A DNA stretch of 63,571 nucleotides, filler included, from Trichosphaerium sp. ATCC 40318 (lineage: Eukaryota; Protista; Tubulinea): assembly GCA_038496445.1 (NCBI GenBank). It is 3 parts of 3 records of this genome, joined end to end, with 100 filler letters (N's around TTAATTAATTAA, not from the genome) between each part and the next. Parts side by side here need not be neighbours in the genome. Positions count along the whole stretch, not along the records: positions 22,542 to 46,752 come from JALMLS010000101.1; 2 more parts are not named here. One strand, given 5' to 3'. Positions 23,696 through 46,752 of the stretch are shown here, one piece after another (within the stretch, counting starts at the first letter, position 1; each line of letters begins with the position of its first letter). Under the pieces are notes generated by a model that worked only from the letters and a program-made list of their open reading frames with translations, had not been told where the DNA came from and did no database searches. Position numbers and translations under genes: made by a program.

Positions 23696-25116
23696 ATGGC
23701 AGCAAAACGCAAGGTACATTAATGAGCGCATTTGCAGTAATATTAGACCATTCATACAGGAGCCTCTGTAGATTAAAAAGCCTTACAAGTTTACTAAGTT
23801 ATTTTCGCTACTTACTAAATTACGCGTAGATAAATACCTCAGAACCTAATAAAAACCATCTTTTTGACCTCCCAGTGGAGCTACATCTCGATATTATCGA
23901 TCTAGATAAACTGTTCTCAAAGTGGCCACTACTATCGAAACACACAGCAATGACAACTAGGTTTGATTGTGAGTTTAATAAACATGGTAAATGGAAAGAT
24001 TGGCACTACAACGGGCTTATAAGAAGGTTATGTGTCTTTTTACATGGTAAACAAGATGGAGAATACAAAGAGTGGCATAACAATGGGAAACTACATACTC
24101 AGCATAATCGTGTTGATGACAAGTACAAAGGAGAGTACAAGACATGGGATTTGAGAGGTAGATTGACTGAGTTTTGTACCTATGTCAATGGTAAACTTGA
24201 AGGAGAATACAATACTTGGCATGCTGGTGTAATGACAAAGAAGTGTTTTTATGTTGATGGTAAACTTGAGGGGGAATACAAGAATTGGACTAAAGAGTTT
24301 CAACTTCTTGTTCATTGTTATTATGTCAATGGTAAGCAAGAAGGTATGTACCGTGAATATTATGAACAAGGTCAACGAAGAATCAGAGTTAATTATGTTG
24401 ATGGTAACAAAGAAGGTGAGTATAAGAGATGGTATGAAAATGGAAACCTAGAAGTTAAGATGTACTTTAAAAATGGTAAAGCAGAAGGAGAACAAACGTA
24501 TTATCATCAAACAGGAAAGAAGTATTTCCAACAGTTTTTGGTAAATGAATTACAACAAGGAGAGTACAAGGAATGGCATTTTAATGGTGCTTTGAAAAAG
24601 CAAAGTAATTACAAAAATGGTGAACTTGACGGAGTCCACAAGGAGTTTCATAATAATGGTCAGTTATGCTGCCAAGGTTTTAATGTAGATGGTAAGCTAA
24701 ATGGAGAGTATAAAGAGTGGCATAGAAATGGTCAATTGTATCAACAGTGTTGGTATGATGATGATAAACTTGAAGGAGAATTAACTCAATGGTATGAAAA
24801 TGGTAACATTGAAAAACATTATCATCTTGTCAATGATAAACTAGAAGGTATGATGAAAGTATGGTACTATAACAAGAATATGCATTATCAATGTAATTAT
24901 GCAAATGATGAATATCATGGGGAGTATACTGAGTGGCATGAAAACGGTCAAGTTTACAAAAAGTGTAATTACACTAATGGAAGGATCAATGACGGAGAGT
25001 ACAATGAATGGTACAACAATGGTCAATTATCTAGACAATATTTTATTGTTGATAATGAAAGGGTAAACAGTTTGACAGTAGAATGGAGTTATAACGGAGA
25101 ACAAGTAAGGAAATAA
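23696..25116 (+). CDS. F-box-like + long MORN-variant repeat protein
   Basis: NHLFDLPVELHLDI N-terminus (short first exon MAAKRK|gtacat modelled), then about 15 GEYKEWxxNGQL-type repeats in a single exon. Confidence 0.85.
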
Positions 25117-32290: not shown

Positions 32291-34054
32291 ATGGCGGAGC
32301 CACAAACTTCGTTGGTTAATTTACAATATGTTAACCGTTTGGCCACTGGTTATGAACATTCAATGGTAATCGCAGACGATGGCTTCGTTTACACATGGGG
32401 ACGAAACAATGAGCGCCAATTGGGCAATACAGACGAAAGAAAGAGTTCTATCGCAAGACCAATAAAGCCACTCATAAATATCGTCTGTATTGCTGATGGA
32501 TGGCGCCATAGCCTTGCAGTTGATTCAAACGGTATTGTGTATTCATGGGGCTTTAACGAAGAAGGTTCATTGGGTCTGGGTCACTTCAAGTCACCTATTT
32601 CGTCACCAACACGTGTTCCAAATCTCACCAAAATCACGAAAGTCACTGCCTATCGTGTGAGTATGGCGTTATCACATTCAGGTCATGTCTACTCTTGGGG
32701 ATACAACTCATGTGATGGATTGGGTCATTCATTCGACAAGGAGAAAGTTTCATCACCAGTGGTTATTCCAAATCTTCAAAATGTTCAAAAAATTCAAACA
32801 AATCGGTATGTAAGTGGAGCAATAACATCAACAGGTCATGTCTTTCTTTGGGGAACAATATTTGACACAGAAAATGATAAAGCATTATTCTTGAATCTGC
32901 AAACAATTTCATGTGTTCCAAACATTGAAACTGCGATTGATGTTGCCATTGGTAATAAGCATGTACTTGTTCTCCTCAAGTCAGGACAAGTATTTTCTTT
33001 TGGATACAACTACCATGGGTGTCTTGGATTGGGTATTGATGACAACAAGTGTGGTCAAGGTATCATCAAAGGATTGAACAACATCGTATCTGTCCATTCT
33101 GGTATTAGGTCATCATTTGCGATTGATGATGAAGGTTGTTTGTTTGGTTGGGGTAATGGGATATTGATTGATTGGTTCTCATCAAACAAACCATTAAAAT
33201 TACCTGGAAAATATCTTGAGTTTGCCAATAAATCATATCATTACTTGGCAATATCTCATGATTTCAGATTGGTTACAGGTGGTTATACTCATTATGGAGA
33301 ATCTGAACCACAACAATTGACGTTCAACAATCACAAAAAGGTACTTTGTCATCTTATCCGTGTATTTCTGTTTATTTGACCCATTATTTAAGCAAACTCA
33401 CCTTAAACAACGAAATACCAAGGTCAATAAAACAGCCATAGATAAAGACGATATAAAAGAAGACAAAGACAAGTACTTATCAAAAGCTGTGATTGATACC
33501 GATCGTGATTACACCAAGTTTGGAGATGCTCCTGAACATCTTGATATGATTCAAGATGCGTTTGAAGCCTTTAAAATACACCAAAATCAAGACTACATCA
33601 ATGACAATGTAAGTACTTAAACACAAAATTACGTTCTCAATGATTGTAGGGCGAACGCATTCCACTTGATACAGATAGGTTATATGAGCCTCCTTCATCA
33701 AACTATACAAACATACTCTTATCTCAACAATCATGGAACGACAAGCCTGATGTTTCTGTTGCCTACACAAAGGTTTCTTTCTTATATTTATCAGACTTGA
33801 AGTTAATCATGTTTATTTAGTCGAATTTCCTTCCACCTCAAGAGAATCAATCAACTGGTACCGCCACGTTTGATTGGAAGTCAGCATTGATGAGGTTGGG
33901 TATTTCAAGTAAACGAGCACAAGAACTCGGATCATTGATGGATGAAGCAGGTATCGAACCCGATGACGTCACCTCAGATGTGCTAAAGGAGCTTGATTTC
34001 AGTCCAATTGAACGTATCAAGGTCATCAAAGCAAAACGTAACAATGCTTTATAA
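32291..34054 (+). CDS. RCC1-repeat beta-propeller protein with C-terminal SAM-like domain (copy 1)
   Basis: VYTWGRNNERQLG, VYSWGFNEEGSLGLG RCC1 blades; spliced tail WKSALMRLG..DVLKELDFSPIERIKVIKA. Confidence 0.85.
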
Positions 34055-35865: not shown

Positions 35866-37165
35866 TTGGGTAAAGAGTTGTAGTTGAACGACGTGTTAAG
35901 TTAAGTCATTTTACTTTTTGATTTGCTTGGCCTGCTTACCTTTACAATCTCAGCCAACTACAATACCAACAAGCTGTAAGCGTATGAGCAACTTTTTTCC
36001 TGACACAACCAAAAAAAAAAGCAAAAGGTATGGTGTAACTAACGCTTTTACTACCTTTCAAATTCCCAGTAAAACGGCCAAGCCCTTTTTTTTGACTGGT
36101 GCCTGTTTAGTTCACATTCTCTTGCACATGCTCTGAATATAATATGAATGAAGATGTGGAACATTTCAAGCGTTTGGTTGGACTGAACAAGACTGTCAAT
36201 ATCGAAGGACACAATAGGCAACAACAACAACAATGGCGAGTAGCAATCAAAACATCCCCTCACCTAAAATCCTTTTCTTTTTCTTGTAAAAATTATTTCT
36301 TTATTTTTCCTTCAAACTCATTTGCAATTCACACGAGTGTTCTTAAATGTAGAATAAATCCGCTCGCATGGCTACGCTAGAGCCACCAAAGACTGAGCGT
36401 CTTTCCTCCCAAGCGCGTCTCCCTTATATTGACAACGTTGTCCAATCTAATTTAAGTTAATTGCAGCACTACAGCAAACTGTCCCTAGCGTATGTGCCGT
36501 TGATTACACATTGTTTGGTATCTTGTACTCCATCTAGATTACCATTAGCATTAATGCCCTCACGTGATTTTTATCAAACTGAGATAACAACCAAAAAACC
36601 AAGGACATCTATTTCAATCTTCGGTGTTTGAACAAAGAGGACCAATTAGTAGTCCATCAACAAACAAACTATTTTCCAAGCAGAAAACACCCACTCCTCC
36701 TAGTGGAAACGTTGCTTTATTCAATTTTGTTTATTTCCCTTCTAAAAAACAAGATGTCTTTGTACTCGCAATCTTGTTATGTAAGTAAACTGCACACTCT
36801 GAGGATGAGCTATTTGCAAAGGGGAAAATGTTTCTTTCTTCCCAAGACTGCTTATTAGTCAAAGGACTTGTCTAATTGGCTTTTCATAAAATGTGATTGC
36901 TTAGGCAATATGTAATCAACGGGTCCTGTACAAAAAGCGTGTTGTTGACGTACAAACAACTTCAAATAGCTACTACCAAACATGCTACGGATGCATTTCA
37001 ATCAAAAGGAATAGTACACGTGGTAGTGATAGTATAAGGAGAGCATGTAAACAAAAAGATTGTCGATATTCTCATTTTTTGCATCATCACGTAAAGCATT
37101 CAGTACATTGTACAAACATAGAGAGATTTGCCTGTCAAATACCTACAGTATTTAAATACACATTA

Positions 37166-38970
37166 ATGGCAGAACCACAACATTTAGAGGTTGGATTACA
37201 ATATAATAACCGTTTGGCCACTGGTTATGAACATTCAATGGTAATCGCAGGGGATGGCTTCATTTACACGTGGGGACTAAACGATGAGCGCCAATTGGGC
37301 AATACAGACGAAAGAAAGAGTTCTATCGCAAGACCAATAAATCACTCATAAATATCGTCTGTATTGCTGCTGGATGGCGCCATAGCCTTGCAGTTGGTTC
37401 AAATGGGGCCGTTTATGCATGGGGCTTTAATAAATACGGTGAATTGGGTCTGGGTCACTTTACATCACCTGTTTCGTCACCAACACGTGTTCCAAATCTC
37501 ACCAAAATCACTCAAGTCACTGCCTATCATGTGAGTATGGCGTTATCACAATCAGGTCATGTCTACTCTTGGGGAGACAACAGATTTCATGGATTGGGTC
37601 ATTCACTTGACAGGTGGTGGGGTTTAACTGACAAACATAAAGTTTCATCACCAGTGGTTATTCCAAACCTTAAGAATGTTCAAAAAATTGAAACTAATAC
37701 ATCTGTAAGTGGAGCAATGACATCAACAGGTCATGTCTTTCTTTGGGGAACAACAAAAGATGAAGCAAAAGATAAAGCATTATTCTTGAATCCAAAGACA
37801 ATTTCACGTGTTCCAAACATTGAAGATGCCACTGATATTGCCATTGGTGAAAAGCATGTGCTTGTTCTCCTCAAGTCAGGACAAGTATTTTCTTTTGGAT
37901 ACAACTACAATGGGTGTCTTGGATTGGGTATTGATGACACATATGGTCAAGGTATCATCAAAGGACTCAATAACATCGTATCTGTCCATGCTGGTTTTTG
38001 GTCATCATTTGCGATTGATGATGAAGGTTGTTTGTTTGGTTGGGGTAAAGGAAAATGGATTGATTCGTTCTCATCAAACAAACCATTAAAATTACCTGGA
38101 AAATATCTTGAGTTTGCCAATAAAGTATGTCATTACTTGGCAATATCTCATGATTTCAGATTGGTTACAAGTGGTAATAATAGTTATGGAGAATCTTCAC
38201 CACAAGAATTGATGTTCAACAATCACAAAAAGGTACTTTGTCATATATCTGTCTGCTTCTATTTCTATTTATTTGACGCATTATTAAGCAAGCTCACTTT
38301 AAACACCGAAACACTGAGGTCAATAAAACAGGCATAGATAAAGATGATATAAAAGAAGACAAAGACAAGTACTTATCAAAAGCTGTGATTGATACCGATC
38401 GTGATTACACCAAGTTTGGAGATGCTCCTGAACATCTTGATATGATTCAAGATGCCTTTGAAGCCTTAAAAATACGCCCAAATCAAGAAGAATACATTAA
38501 AGACGTAAGTATATAATACAATCCAAAAATAACTTACAAATTTGTTAGATTGGAATTACTCTACCACCTCATGAAACCAGAGTAAGATCGCCGTATGATC
38601 TACCTCAAAAATCATGGATAGATAAACCTCATATTTCTGTGGTAAGCACCAACAAGGTACATGTTGATTCTTAAAACATTTAAATGTTTTGTTGAAAGAA
38701 AAGTAACCATTTTAGGCGCTATTTGCTCAACCAGAGGCTCAATCAATCGATCCTTCTCTTCAACCAATGCAACCTGAAATCATTGGCTTGGATTGGGCAA
38801 TATCACTTGCAAGGTTTATTGCAAGTGAGCGAGCACAGGAACTTGGTTCATTGATGAATGAATTACGCATTAAACCCAATGACATTGACCAAGACATCTT
38901 AATTGAACTTGGCTTCAATTTGAAGGAACGTATCAGGGTCACCAAAGCCAAGCGCAAGAACCTCATTTGA
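37166..38970 (+). CDS. RCC1 + SAM-like protein (copy 2; 1-nt frameshift near 37342)
   Basis: Highly similar to copy 1; ataaatcactc vs ataaagccactc breaks the frame; last exons more divergent. Confidence 0.8.
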
Positions 38971-42066: not shown

Positions 42067-44590
42067 TCAGCTTTTTTTTACAGATGACCACTTCTTAACG
42101 TGTGTACATTTAAAGTTTCTGAACCTACCCAATTGTTGATGTTGAAACAAACCAACAGCACCACAACCTCCTGATGCTATACAAACTGTACCAACATTTT
42201 CACCCTTACAAAATATTTCCACTTTTCCTTTTGAGCTTTTCACGTGTAGCTTGACTGAGAACCACTCTTTATCAGGTACAACTGTCTTGTACGTTGTCAC
42301 ATAATTTAAGGTACCTTCTTTATCTACCGTAGCGTACTGAACAGCTCTGTCCGTATCGCTTAAATGTGGTCTAAAATAGACAACAAAAAATGCTACAAAA
42401 AAAATCAGTGATTAAGAGTATTCTGTAAAAGAACTTACATTTATCTTCCTTGGCATGAAAAACAATACCAGGGTGTCCGAATGGGTTCTGAATGGTAGAC
42501 TTGTTGTATAAATCGCACTCTATAATATAGTCATGCCAGTTGTATTCACCATAGACGATAAACAAAGGTCTCTTGTCTATGCAACGCTGATAAAGTTCGC
42601 CATTATGATTTACATCCCATTGACCCTCGTGATACTTAGCTTGTAGACTGAGAACATCTATAACCTCCTGTATAGGATAAGAATAAAGTAAGAACAACAA
42701 CGAAGGAACTTCTTAAATACCATATGCCTCAAGATGGCCGTGAAGCCTTCTATCTGATAAAAATCAGCCTCCTCGTTTAGTCTCTTGCACAAGACTTTGT
42801 CTTTTGAGTCATAACAAATAGTCCCATTGCGAAGGTAGTTCAGGACGTAATTGAAGAGCTCACCGTCTCTATCAATGAAAACTGAACCGTCTTCTAGCTT
42901 TTTGACACCAAAACGACCACTGTCTCAATGTCAGTTAACCATTTAACTCTTACGTGTAGTAAATATTAGCAAAACGTCTTCTTTTTGTGCCTGCATACCT
43001 TTTTACGTGATGGACATCAGCGCTCTGTACGCCAAAGTGCAAAATAACGCATACAGGCAAAATGCAAAAAGAGCTGCAGAAAAAGCCCGTAGACTACAAC
43101 CGTAGCAAAGAAAACGCTGCCAAACAGCGTGCCTATCTAGTACAAATCTCTGAGAGCCTTTTCAAAGTAAAACAACAAGGTTGGGAAGTGTTAAATGAGG
43201 AATTCCACTCCATCAAAGAGTCAAAGCAAGTTCAAGTATCAGAACCTAATTTTGCGTTGTTTGACAGAGGGAATATAAGAAATTACTCAGTTAAATCTAT
43301 TTGTTCAAAGCTGGTTTTGATAAGAGTCTGGGAATATCTTGCAACATGCTCTGAAGCTCAACGAGGTATTATATACACTGCCTGAACAAAAAAAGGTGTC
43401 AAGTTAAATTCATTTTGGAAGACGCCAATAGCTGTTTCTGAGATTATGAAATATTTTGGAATTCTGTGGCTGTATGAACTAGAATCAGAGTGGACTCTCT
43501 TTAAAAGATGTTAAAGTATTGCAGGAGAAAGAAAAAATCCTTCTCAAACCCCTCCCTGATGCTGTTGAATATCATTGCATAGATGAATGTAAATTTGAAA
43601 ACAAAGAAATTGATGGACCTGAAATGATTTTGTGTTTTGATTGTGAACTTTGGTATCACACTGAATGTCTTAATTGGGATTCTGAGGAGCACCAGAAAAA
43701 CGTTGAGGGCGATTCATGGTCTTGTTACAACTGCAGCAAGCAACAAGCAAAAAAACAACAAAAAATATTGAGATGGACAGAGGAAACTCTAAAATCCAAA
43801 CACAAACCAGAGCTTCAGTCTATATGCAAGGAGCTACTACTTAAATCAGATGGCTACAAGCCTGTTTTGATCAATCGCATTCTTCGAGCCACAAATCCAA
43901 ATCTACTTGAAAATGCAGAAAAAGAGCTTGATTTATTTGTAGGCCGTCCCAGAACTGACAAAGCCTTTTTGCATTCCTTTTATAAGGCCAAATTTTGCTC
44001 TGTGGATAAGGCCAACCAGCTGCCATGGTGTAATGTTGAAAAGGGTCGGGTGCAAAATGAGAAATGTCGCATGATACAAGGTCTTATGAAACTGACCTTA
44101 ATATCTTTACATGCCATTATCGACAGTATGACACCTGATAAAACGCCGAAATTCACCACTAGTAGGCGCAAGGCTGCTAGCTTGCTATTCAATGTAACTT
44201 TGTACACAAAAGATCACATCAGTAAAAATAAATGACGAAATACTTTTACTACACGTAACTTTTTTTTTTACTACACGTAAGGAGTTTAATCTCTTGTATC
44301 CCTACATACCTAAACATAGCTCCTAGCATAGAGTCTGGGTACTTTTGGAGGTTTTTTAACGAAACCCTATATTTAACACCGCCAACATCCAATAATACAT
44401 TCTCGTTGAATGTTTGTACGCTAGGTAGTGCGTTGTAAGCAAATAAAAAGTACAAAAAAAACACTTACATTGTGTTTATTTTCTGATACTTCCTCTCTAA
44501 CTCTTCAAGCTCTTGTATTCGCGTGTTAACTGCATCATTGAGTTTGTTGGCGAGTTCTTGTATCCCTTCCGTAATAACAGGCGGTTCCAT
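42067..44590 (-). CDS. KCTD-type BTB/POZ protein with C-terminal ConA/lectin-like beta-sandwich
   Basis: VLLDVGGVKYRVSLKNLQKYPDSMLGAMF|SGRF..VFIDRDGELFNYVLNYLR..EEADFYQI; WHDYIIECD..GAVGL; 1390-nt intron 44309-42920. Confidence 0.88.
42947..44285 (+). mobile_element. piggyBac-like DNA transposon (internally deleted/decayed) encoding PHD and SAP domains
   Basis: TTAA at 42943-42946 and 44286-44289; inverted ends CTC(C)TTACGTGTAGTAAA; extra subterminal copy at 44245-44258; FWKTPIAVSEIMKYFGIL and FYKAKFCSVDKANQL resemble piggyBac transposase motifs. Confidence 0.78.
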
Positions 44591-45421: not shown

Positions 45422-46752
45422 TTATAGAGCATTGTTGCGTTTTGCTTTGATGACCTTGATACGTTCGAGTGGACTGAAATCAAGCTCTTTCAGCACATCT
45501 GAGGTGACATCATCAGGTTCAATACCTGCTTCATCCATCAATGATCCGAGTTCTTGTGCTTTTTCACTTGAAATACCCAACCTCATCAACGCTGACTTCC
45601 AATCAAATTTTTCAGTAATAATTGATTGATTCTCTGGAGGTGGACAGAAATCCGGCTAAATAAACGTGATTAACGTTAATCATAAAATCAGATAAAAGAG
45701 ATAGGCACCTTTGTGTCAGCAACTGAGAAGTGAGGTTTGTCAATCCATGATTGTTGAGATAAGAGCATGTTCTTATAGCTCGATGAAGGAGACCCATCTG
45801 TATCAAGCGGTATGCATTCGCCCTGTTATCCTTTAGACACGTAGTTTTGTGTTTAAGGTACGTACATTATCATTGATGTATTCTTCTTGATTTTGGTGTA
45901 TTTTTAAGGCTTCAAAGGCATCTTGAATCATATCAAGATGTTCAGGAGCATCTCCAAACTTGGTGTAATCACGATCGGTATCAATCACAGCTTTTGATAA
46001 GTACTTGTCTTTGTCTTCTTTTATATCATCTTTATCTATGGCTGTTTTATTGACCTTGTCATTTTGGTGTTCAAAGTGAGTTTGCTTAATAATGTGTCAA
46101 ATAAATAGAGGCATACGGATAAGATGACAGAGTTGAGTACCTTTTTGTGATTGTTGAATGTCAATTTTTGTGGTGAAGATTGTTCATAACTGTTGTCACC
46201 ATAACGATTCTTACCACCTGTAACCAATCTGAAATCATGAGATATTGCCAAGAAATGATATGATTTAAAGGCAAAGTCAAGATATTCTCCAGGTAATTTT
46301 AATGGTTTGTTTGATGAGAACCAATCAGTCCATTTCCCTTTACCCCATCCAAATAAACAACCTTCATCATCAATCGCAAATGATGACGATACACCAGCAT
46401 GTACAGATACGATGTTATTGAGTCCTTTGATGATACCGTGGTCATACTTGCCATCAATACCCAATCCAAGACACCCATTATAGTTGTATCCAAACGAAAA
46501 TACTTGTCCTGACTTGAGGAGAACAAGCACATGCTGAAAACCAATAGCAATACCAGTGCCATGTTCAATGTTTGGAACACGTGAAATTGTCTTTGGATTC
46601 AAGAATAATGCTTTGCCTTTTGCTTTGTCTTTTGTTGTTCCCCAAAGAAAGACGTGACCTGTTGATGTCATTGCTCCACTTACATAACAATTAGTTTCAA
46701 TTTTTTTGAAACATTTTGAAGATTGGGAATAACCGCTGGTGATGAAACAGTA
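45422..46752 (-). CDS. RCC1 + SAM-like protein (copy 3, 5' end lost in gap)
   Basis: Inverted paralog, near-identical to copies 1 and 2, with the copy-1-type tail. Confidence 0.82.

Follow-up and report, generated by a model that had tools for sequence, protein, structure and literature searches.

The DNA analysed here is a stretch of 63,571 nucleotides (nt) from the tubulinean protist Trichosphaerium sp. ATCC 40318 (assembly GCA_038496445.1), made of three parts of three records joined by filler, and is called the window below. It contains a 1.35-kb DNA transposon at positions 42943-44289 (plus strand), the sole copy within its piece, JALMLS010000101.1 (positions 22,542 to 46,752). Lodged in an intron of a BTB gene, this element very probably derives from a divergent transposon of the piggyBac superfamily and is a non-autonomous copy with an internal deletion and a broken frame. 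The window copy is an ordinary dead element, and its value is that it points to a family: its reading frames are colinear with intact metagenome proteins of about 655-665 amino acids (aa), in which a zinc module and a SAP domain lie between the putative second and third catalytic aspartates. The lineage is a new architectural variant of piggyBac.

A piggyBac-like family with a zinc module and SAP domain in the core

An exhaustive phmmer search with the downstream open reading frame of the window copy (ORF2) against 1.8 billion representatives returned 28 hits, about 11 of which are colinear relatives, including P0001 (E 2e-28), P0003 (1e-21) and P0006 (9e-18). Two of the relatives, P0006 (654 aa) and P0029 (655 aa), are 75% identical and are encoded as single ORFs on 2.4-2.5-kb metagenome contigs. 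P0001 is a second exon that joins its first exon through a 44-nt GT..AG intron, giving a spliced product of 664 aa on contig L009, and contig L010 has the same two-exon layout; P0006, P0029 and the spliced L009 and L010 products are the intact transposases that define the size range given above. Word-indexed homologue searches with P0006, profile A2 and L009 exon 1 added only P0029 and P0030, a locus search with family profile A3 returned two loci, and when viral contigs were scanned with the paired right-end motif there were no matches. The family is rare in the searched collections. The L009 lineage appears to have been active recently in several copies, as its contigs encode an identical protein between flanks that differ. 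In the intact enzyme, a basic helical N-terminus is followed by the first-Asp block (A-I/A-D-E-T-I...G-K-P-x-P-x-G) and the putative second-Asp block (V-L-D-A-R-F), then by a three-strand insertion, a helical linker, the zinc module and the SAP domain, and finally by the putative third-Asp block (F-Y-K...V-D-K-A-N-Q) and a tail of about 60 residues.

Membership of the piggyBac superfamily, as the initial annotation had proposed, is well supported. Against the Pfam model DDE_Tnp_1_7 (PF13843, cut-off 22.4 bits), the first exons of L002 and L009 score 29.7 and 29.2 bits, and that of L010, a second independent lineage above the gathering threshold, scores 28.0 bits. Sub-threshold matches over the same stretch were obtained for P0029, P0003 and L013. 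The match spans profile positions 109-183 only, which is the region of the first aspartate (Asp1), and includes A-I-D-E-T-I...G-K-P-H-P-x-G, so that Asp1 itself (A-[IA]-D-E-T) falls inside the Pfam-aligned stretch. In the ESM Atlas, the nearest named clusters to P0006 among the matches listed all carry DDE_Tnp_1_7. Single-sequence searches of the exon-1 proteins against the PDB gave no match.

The full DDD triad is inferred, with the second and third aspartates (Asp2 and Asp3) assigned from motif and order. The second block (H-V-[IV]-L-D-A-R-F) and the third (F-Y-K-x2-F-x2-[VI]-D-K-x-N-Q) have the order and spacing that fit the piggyBac pattern, and in P0006 about 268 aa separate the putative Asp2 from the putative Asp3. 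The third block is the family's most conserved one; it reads HSFYKAKFCSVDKANQ in ORF2, and columns H152, F154, Y155, F159, D163 and N166 are invariant among 13 sequences. An ESM Atlas feature search with the C-terminal third of ORF2 gave no piggyBac signal (best score 0.81), and we therefore keep Asp3 as a putative assignment. The earlier suggestion that this part of ORF2 resembles the third catalytic Asp region stands as far as a conserved block with an invariant aspartate is concerned, by motif and position and with no profile match to accompany it.

The PHD finger of the window copy retains all eight zinc ligands (C-x3-C...C-x2-C-x4-H-x2-C...C-x2-C) in alignment with P0001, and the W-[YF]-H and M-I-x-C positions are also aligned between the two. 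Its nearest solved sequences and folds, among the matches listed, are PHD fingers, mostly readers of histone H3 di- or trimethylated at lysine 4 (H3K4me2/3), and include PHF8, EBS/SHL, MLL5, ASH1L, DIDO, TAF3 and PHF2. The top Foldseek matches have probabilities of 0.9-0.99 and E-values of 0.04 or more, the latter being weak because the PHD is a small part of a model with a mean predicted local distance difference test (pLDDT) score of 64. Over the SAP segment (ORF2 aa 91-120), AlphaFold2 (AF2) predicts a helix-turn-helix with pLDDT 91-97. The aligned segments of P0002 and P0006 exceed the Pfam SAP cut-off at 38.6 and 27.7 bits, and the family profile matches the SAP structures 2rno and DEK with an E-value of 0.0018.

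That the PHD finger and the SAP domain sit inside the catalytic core, as the initial annotation had proposed, is borne out by P0001, a single uninterrupted ORF of 368 aa in which the Asp2 motif VLDARF, the PHD (28.3 bits), a SAP-like segment and the Asp3 motif IDKANQ follow one another; the same module order is found in the single-ORF proteins P0006 and P0029. Comparison with the profiles that the initial annotation had named gave matches above cut-off for the PHD in the window copy and for DDE_Tnp_1_7 and SAP in its relatives. A full PHD is present only in the window copy and in L009 (P0001), two of about eight lineages. At its position, P0003, P0004, P0005, P0006, P0010, P0029 and L010 have only a four-cysteine knuckle, C-x2-C...C-x2-C, and P0002/L011 and P0007 have a serine-rich low-complexity stretch. 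The SAP domain occurs in all lineages and is colinear with the Asp3 block in at least eight. A maximum-likelihood tree of the region from SAP to the end did not recover the branching order of PHD gain and loss (ancestral or gained twice).

No cysteine-rich, PHD-like domain follows the core in this family. Full-length members stop about 60 aa past the third block, and the stop is separated from the right terminus by only about 50 nt in the window copy, or by some 100-120 nt in L001, L007, L009 and L010, too little for another exon or a C-terminal finger. In piggyBac-like transposases and most domesticated relatives, a cysteine-rich domain lies C-terminal to the core (PMC8086355), and the word 'most' in that study makes the domain typical rather than universal. 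This domain has a PHD-like cross-brace fold and recognises motifs repeated at the element ends (PMC8086355, PMC5861402) or, in PiggyMac, the histone H3 tail (PMC8086355). The largest piggyBac mining study required both the cysteine-rich domain and a TTAACC-type end (PMC13461360), acceptance criteria that excluded lineages like this one by design. Our literature searches found no relevant paper on a SAP domain or an internal PHD in a piggyBac transposase.

We propose that the zinc module and the SAP domain would together replace the lost cysteine-rich domain in tethering the enzyme to DNA or chromatin. SAP would contact DNA, perhaps the paired TTACGTG motifs at the element ends, and the PHD would contact H3 tails, biasing integration towards H3K4-methylated chromatin. 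SAP is the better candidate for the conserved DNA contact because it is present in all lineages, and the PHD more likely adds a chromatin preference, since it is found in two lineages and is of the reader type. Histone reading by the PHD may occur, at somewhat less than even odds in our estimate, and binding of end DNA by the PHD is less probable again. The broadest form of the proposal, in which a clade that lost the cysteine-rich domain rebuilt its targeting within the core, with a PHD of the H3K4me2/3 type and SAP tethering the transpososome to active chromatin and perhaps with a relaxed TTAA requirement and circular or tandem forms, is speculative and on balance improbable.

The window copy and its host intron

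In its cis-features the window copy is a cut-and-paste transposon. The inverted repeat CTTACGTGTAGTAAA, perfect over 15 nt, is located at 42949-42963 and 44267-44281, and extends outward to agreement at 17 of 18 positions with one indel (left CTC-TTACGTGTAGTAAA; right, as reverse complement, CTCCTTACGTGTAGTAAA). A further, subterminal copy of the repeat is at 44245-44258. With up to two mismatches, the 14-mer of the element ends is found three times in the whole window, always at the element ends, compared with 0.42 expected, and none of 100 shuffles reached this count. The TTACGTG core occurs twice at each end in mirror orientation (42950 and 43003 on the plus strand; 44252 and 44274 on the minus strand), where 0.08 per strand would be expected within the element. 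TTAA abuts the left repeat and is set off from the right repeat by a single base, both flanks read TTTAA, and the frequency of TTAA in the piece is 0.0076 per nt. The element thus combines short terminal inverted repeats with subterminal repeats, a trait of the piggyBac superfamily. Its features and those of the host intron are as follows.

42920..44309, minus strand: host intron of the KCTD-type BTB gene, 1390 nt, GT..AG, with the element antisense inside (complementary DNA (cDNA) joint 42919 to 44310 in X4)
42943..42946, plus strand: left flanking TTAA, candidate target-site duplication (TTTAA with 42942), from the sequence
42947..42963, plus strand: left terminal inverted repeat CTCTTACGTGTAGTAAA, from repeat comparison; terminus CTC(C)TTA(C/A)GTG also in L010
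43003..43009, plus strand: second left-end TTACGTG, putative transposase-binding repeat, from the motif count
43062..43385, plus strand: ORF1, remnant of the transposase N-terminus, TGA at 43383-43385 (BLASTP to P0006 aa 51-127, E 1e-10)
43386..43514, plus strand: continuation in the same frame with W-K-x-P-I...Y-F-G motif, TAA at 43512-43514 (BLASTP to P0006 aa 138-167, E 1e-5)
43489..43508, plus strand: internal deletion joint, frame 0 to frame 1 (tblastn against the spliced L009 product; X4 171-nt contig)
43519..44235, plus strand: ORF2, remnant of the transposase C-terminal third with PHD, SAP and Asp3 block (P0001 E 2e-28, P0006 E 9e-18)
43588..43734, plus strand: PHD finger, ORF2 aa 24-72, C4HC3 ligands intact (Pfam PF00628, 28.6 bits, cut-off 24)
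43804..43890, plus strand: SAP domain, ORF2 aa 96-124 (Pfam PF02037, 20.8 bits, below the cut-off of 23.9)
43972..44019, plus strand: H-S-F-Y-K-x2-F-x3-D-K-A-N-Q block with putative third catalytic Asp (D163 of ORF2), from order and motif
44244..44258, minus strand: subterminal repeat TTTTACTACACGTAA, inner copy of the end motif, from a repeat search
44267..44284, minus strand: right terminal inverted repeat, reverse complement CTCCTTACGTGTAGTAAA, from repeat comparison
44286..44289, plus strand: right flanking TTAA, separated from the repeat end by one T (44285), from the sequence

The coding remnants account for the two ends of a transposase. By tblastn, P0006 aa 24-177 covers 43059-43508, and reading in frame through the TGA of ORF1 leads to ...FWKTPIAVSEIMKYFGILWL; ORF2 matches P0006 aa 490-629 and P0001 aa 162-352. 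Of the spliced L009 product, the element matches only aa 25-174 and 434-644. Some 260 codons, Asp1 and Asp2 among them, have been lost in the deletion, and so has the family's intron. With a TGA stop, a frameshift at the joint and two of the three catalytic blocks gone, the window copy is dead and non-autonomous. The loss of these two blocks means that it cannot encode an active enzyme, and it would be mobilised, if at all, in trans by the transposase of a full-length copy.

Transcript data bear on both the element and its relatives. Contig X1, a 593-nt cDNA that begins with the template-switch oligo, covers 43319-43890 at 98% identity in the sense direction of the element; as it spans the deletion joint, a deleted copy is transcribed in that direction. 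A 171-nt contig from X4 matches 43491-43583 and diverges upstream of 43491, the same point as the deletion joint, which suggests a copy without this deletion. Transcribed copies of the element are thus present in a close relative or strain. The X1 contig, at 98% identity, is less diverged than the host exons of that organism (about 96.5%), a hint that its copy is non-orthologous and was shared more recently. In the marine metagenome runs X2 and X3, from the same sample, a 188-nt contig is 99% identical to 43077-43264 in the ORF1 region, and the organism or the element therefore occurs in marine samples.

The host intron is documented by an X4 cDNA contig from a close relative or strain (exons about 96.5% identical), which joins position 42919 to 44310 and also lacks the 46- and 48-nt introns nearby; on the minus strand, each of these introns runs from GT to AG. 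Since the 1390-nt intron is spliced exactly in this cDNA, the host disposes of the element by ordinary splicing. The spliced translation of the host gene, ...VLLDVGGVKYRVSLKNLQKYPDSMLGAMF followed by SGRF...FIDRDGELFNYVLNYLRNG, is that of a KCTD-type BTB protein, and one upstream host exon matches Pfam BTB_2 with an E-value of 0.0013. Once the element and one TTAA are removed (1343 nt), the minus strand retains a GT..AG intron of 47 nt, similar in length to the neighbouring ones and expected to read ...CAAGAGATTAAATGGTTAAC... In our model the element would have inserted, apparently at TTAA, antisense into this intron of about 47 nt, and it leaves the host messenger RNA together with the intron.

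What the initial annotation had read from this region agrees with these results. TTAA on both sides (42943-42946 and 44286-44289), imperfect 17-bp inverted ends with a subterminal repeat, antisense nesting in a BTB-gene intron and the recovery of a normal 47-nt intron once the element is taken out were all confirmed, the nesting by the cDNA joint and the KCTD-type translation. The continuation of ORF1 past one TGA is upheld by the separate matches of both pieces to P0006, and the missing middle of the DDD core by the two-part alignment to the L009 product.

Two observations concern the surroundings of the BTB gene. Three RCC1-repeat-like ORFs, paralogues within 15 kb of each other at 32291-33379 (plus), 37079-38337 (plus) and 46036-46671 (minus), have near-identical C-terminal halves with one copy inverted, a local gene family expansion around the BTB gene. 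At 23875-25116 (plus), an intronless ORF of 413 aa consists almost entirely of MORN-like repeats (G-x-[KQ]-[ED]-G-E-Y-K-x-W).

Termini, target sites and alternative explanations

Several results weigh against a piggyBac element with PHD and SAP as working parts of its core. DDE_Tnp_1_7 has no Pfam match on the window ORFs themselves, which is explained by the deletion of the matching region, and none on the Asp2 or Asp3 region of any family member. Compared with PDB sequences, family profile A2 finds SAP-domain matches only and no piggyBac entry, and the AF2 model of full-length P0006, built from a 10-row alignment, has a pLDDT of 47, too poor to test the fold. The SAP domain of the window copy is below its Pfam cut-off (20.8 vs 23.9 bits), and the restriction of the full PHD to two of about eight lineages means that it is not essential to the family's transposition. 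At the termini, TTAA is next to the element in none of seven flanks of the L009 lineage, and in L008 the sequence CCTAAT...ATTAGG beside the CTCGTT core is inverted, not direct, with unrelated outer flanks. As TTAA is palindromic, it may belong to the inverted repeat as its outermost bases instead of being a target duplication; no empty site was seen.

The CTCC-type termini give a different picture. The terminus CTC(C)TTA(C/A)GTG is common to the window copy and L010, and L013, from a 102-kb long-read contig, begins CTCCTAACG; in these three, TTAA lies within 1 nt of five of the six ends, compared with about 0.03 expected per end. L008 has a 43-nt inverted repeat (93%) that begins CCTAATCTCGTT on both sides, and the termini of the L009 lineage are CTCGTTGAGG on the left and ...CTTGAACGAG on the right. 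A TTAA duplication at the window copy is consistent with these sequences, not proven, and may not extend to the whole family.

The relatives' contigs show further variety at their ends. L002-L006 and L009, which encode the identical protein P0001, differ between samples in their surroundings, with at least five right flanks and two left ones, and all 7 of 7 have an A three positions ahead of the terminus. L003 and L009 share a left flank and differ in the right flank, and the short-read contigs of this lineage may be chimeric. The right flank of L009 (L009:2359-2400) resembles the 3' end of a tRNA gene (GGTTCGATTCCCGG...CCA) and may represent an insertion beside one. Beyond the right terminus of L005 (L005:2168-2197) comes the element's own 5' region in reverse complement (ATCACGGACAGCACGAGCGAAAAAAC), which reflects an inverted arrangement or else an artefact of assembly. 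Head-to-tail junctions occur in two related lineages (L010:2100-2256 with L010:1-134; L012:600-700 with L012:1431-1571), where GTCACGTAAGGAG is joined to TTAAGTGCGG and CACCTGAACGAG to TTCAGGTCC; in each, a complete right end meets a left end that lacks the first 4 nt, and TTAA does not occur at the join. The tail of L010 repeats its head, and L012 runs on into the Asp1 region of a second copy. These junctions could be tandem copies, excised circles or assembler wrap-around.

Such termini could also belong to a lineage that is piggyBac-derived but mechanistically different, with TTAA-like bases as part of the inverted repeat, a target that is not strictly TTAA and excised or tandem forms. The inverted L008 sequence, the L009-lineage flanks and the junctions in L010 and L012 are in its favor, but it does not account for the TTAA at five of six CTCC-type ends, and contigs of a multi-copy element assembled from short reads, such as L003 and L009, can be chimeric; we judge it rather unlikely. 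A PIF/Harbinger element, or another superfamily with a 3-bp TAA or TTA duplication and a superficial likeness to piggyBac, is far less probable still. The flanks alone would be compatible with TAA, as TTTAA contains both TAA and TTA, and the window ORFs lack a piggyBac profile match, but the relatives exceed the DDE_Tnp_1_7 threshold and the nearest named Atlas clusters among the matches listed are all of piggyBac type. We rejected a Harbinger identity after Pfam searches at E-values up to 10 gave no DDE_Tnp_4 signal and no Myb/SANT-like second protein or ORF was found.

The origin and role of the internal module allow two other explanations. The PHD-SAP segment could be a host gene fragment captured by a deletion derivative, through transduplication or template switching in gap repair: the copy is internally rearranged, its PHD adjoins the deletion joint, and most relatives lack a full PHD. 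Yet P0001, from unrelated metagenome samples and 36% identical, carries PHD, SAP and Asp3 block in this order along with the Asp2 block in one ORF, and SAP remains colinear with the Asp3 block in at least eight lineages. Capture by the window copy is effectively excluded on this comparison, and we regard the module as native to the lineage. The internal zinc module, PHD included, might instead be a relocated end-binding finger for the TTACGTG repeats and not a histone reader. The piggyBac C-terminal domain is itself PHD-like and binds end repeats (PMC8086355, PMC5861402), and this family combines the absence of that domain with paired repeats at each end. Against this, the nearest folds are mostly H3K4me2/3 readers, with no piggyBac entry among the matches listed, and the C-terminal blocks still look intact in lineages that have no finger at all. 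Both PHD lineages also retain the W-x-H and M-I-x-C positions, which we take to be the typical methyl-lysine cage positions of ING2 and BPTF. A relocated finger is thus possible but doubtful.

Comparison with known systems

The preferred reading, a divergent piggyBac family with its accessory domains inside the core, shares with canonical piggyBac elements (Trichoplusia ni PB and piggyBac-like) the Pfam match of relatives over the first-Asp region and the order of the three Asp blocks, with an insertion separating Asp2 from Asp3. Short inverted ends accompanied by subterminal repeats are also common to both, as is the TTAA that flanks the window copy on either side. The differences are as follows. 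The family lacks the C-terminal cysteine-rich domain (described in PMC8086355); it has a helical linker, zinc module and SAP domain between Asp2 and Asp3 (the interval of about 268 aa in P0006); and its termini start CTC(C/G)TT instead of CCC, with TTAA flanks missing in some sublineages. A SAP domain is also found in the ESM Atlas cluster named 'Transposase IS4/SAP domain-containing protein', the nearest named cluster to P0006 (score 0.90), in which 100% of the 58 members carry DDE_Tnp_1_7 and 55% carry SAP. Its representative has 864 aa with no PHD listed, and the likeness lies in the shared pair of domains.

Chromatin contact by a finger of the piggyBac family has a precedent in PiggyMac, the domesticated transposase of Paramecium, whose zinc finger touches the histone H3 tail and not DNA (PMC8086355). 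In PiggyMac the finger adopts a C1-like fold and follows the core, whereas the one described here is a canonical PHD within the core and belongs to a mobile element.

As a tool, piggyBac is of major importance in genome engineering, with targeting limited to TTAA and little control by chromatin state. If our reading holds, the piggyBac core would tolerate large functional insertions between the second and third catalytic aspartates, and the family would offer a natural design for chromatin-guided integration, a counterpart to engineered chromatin-targeted piggyBac fusions and to the logic of the RAG2 PHD. In V(D)J recombination, a transposase-derived DDE system, the PHD of RAG2 reads H3K4me3 and couples cleavage to active chromatin; it is carried on a separate subunit, and the catalytic protein is related to Transib. 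The functional analogy that we propose is with a PHD of reader type placed inside the transposase itself, which may read H3K4me3.

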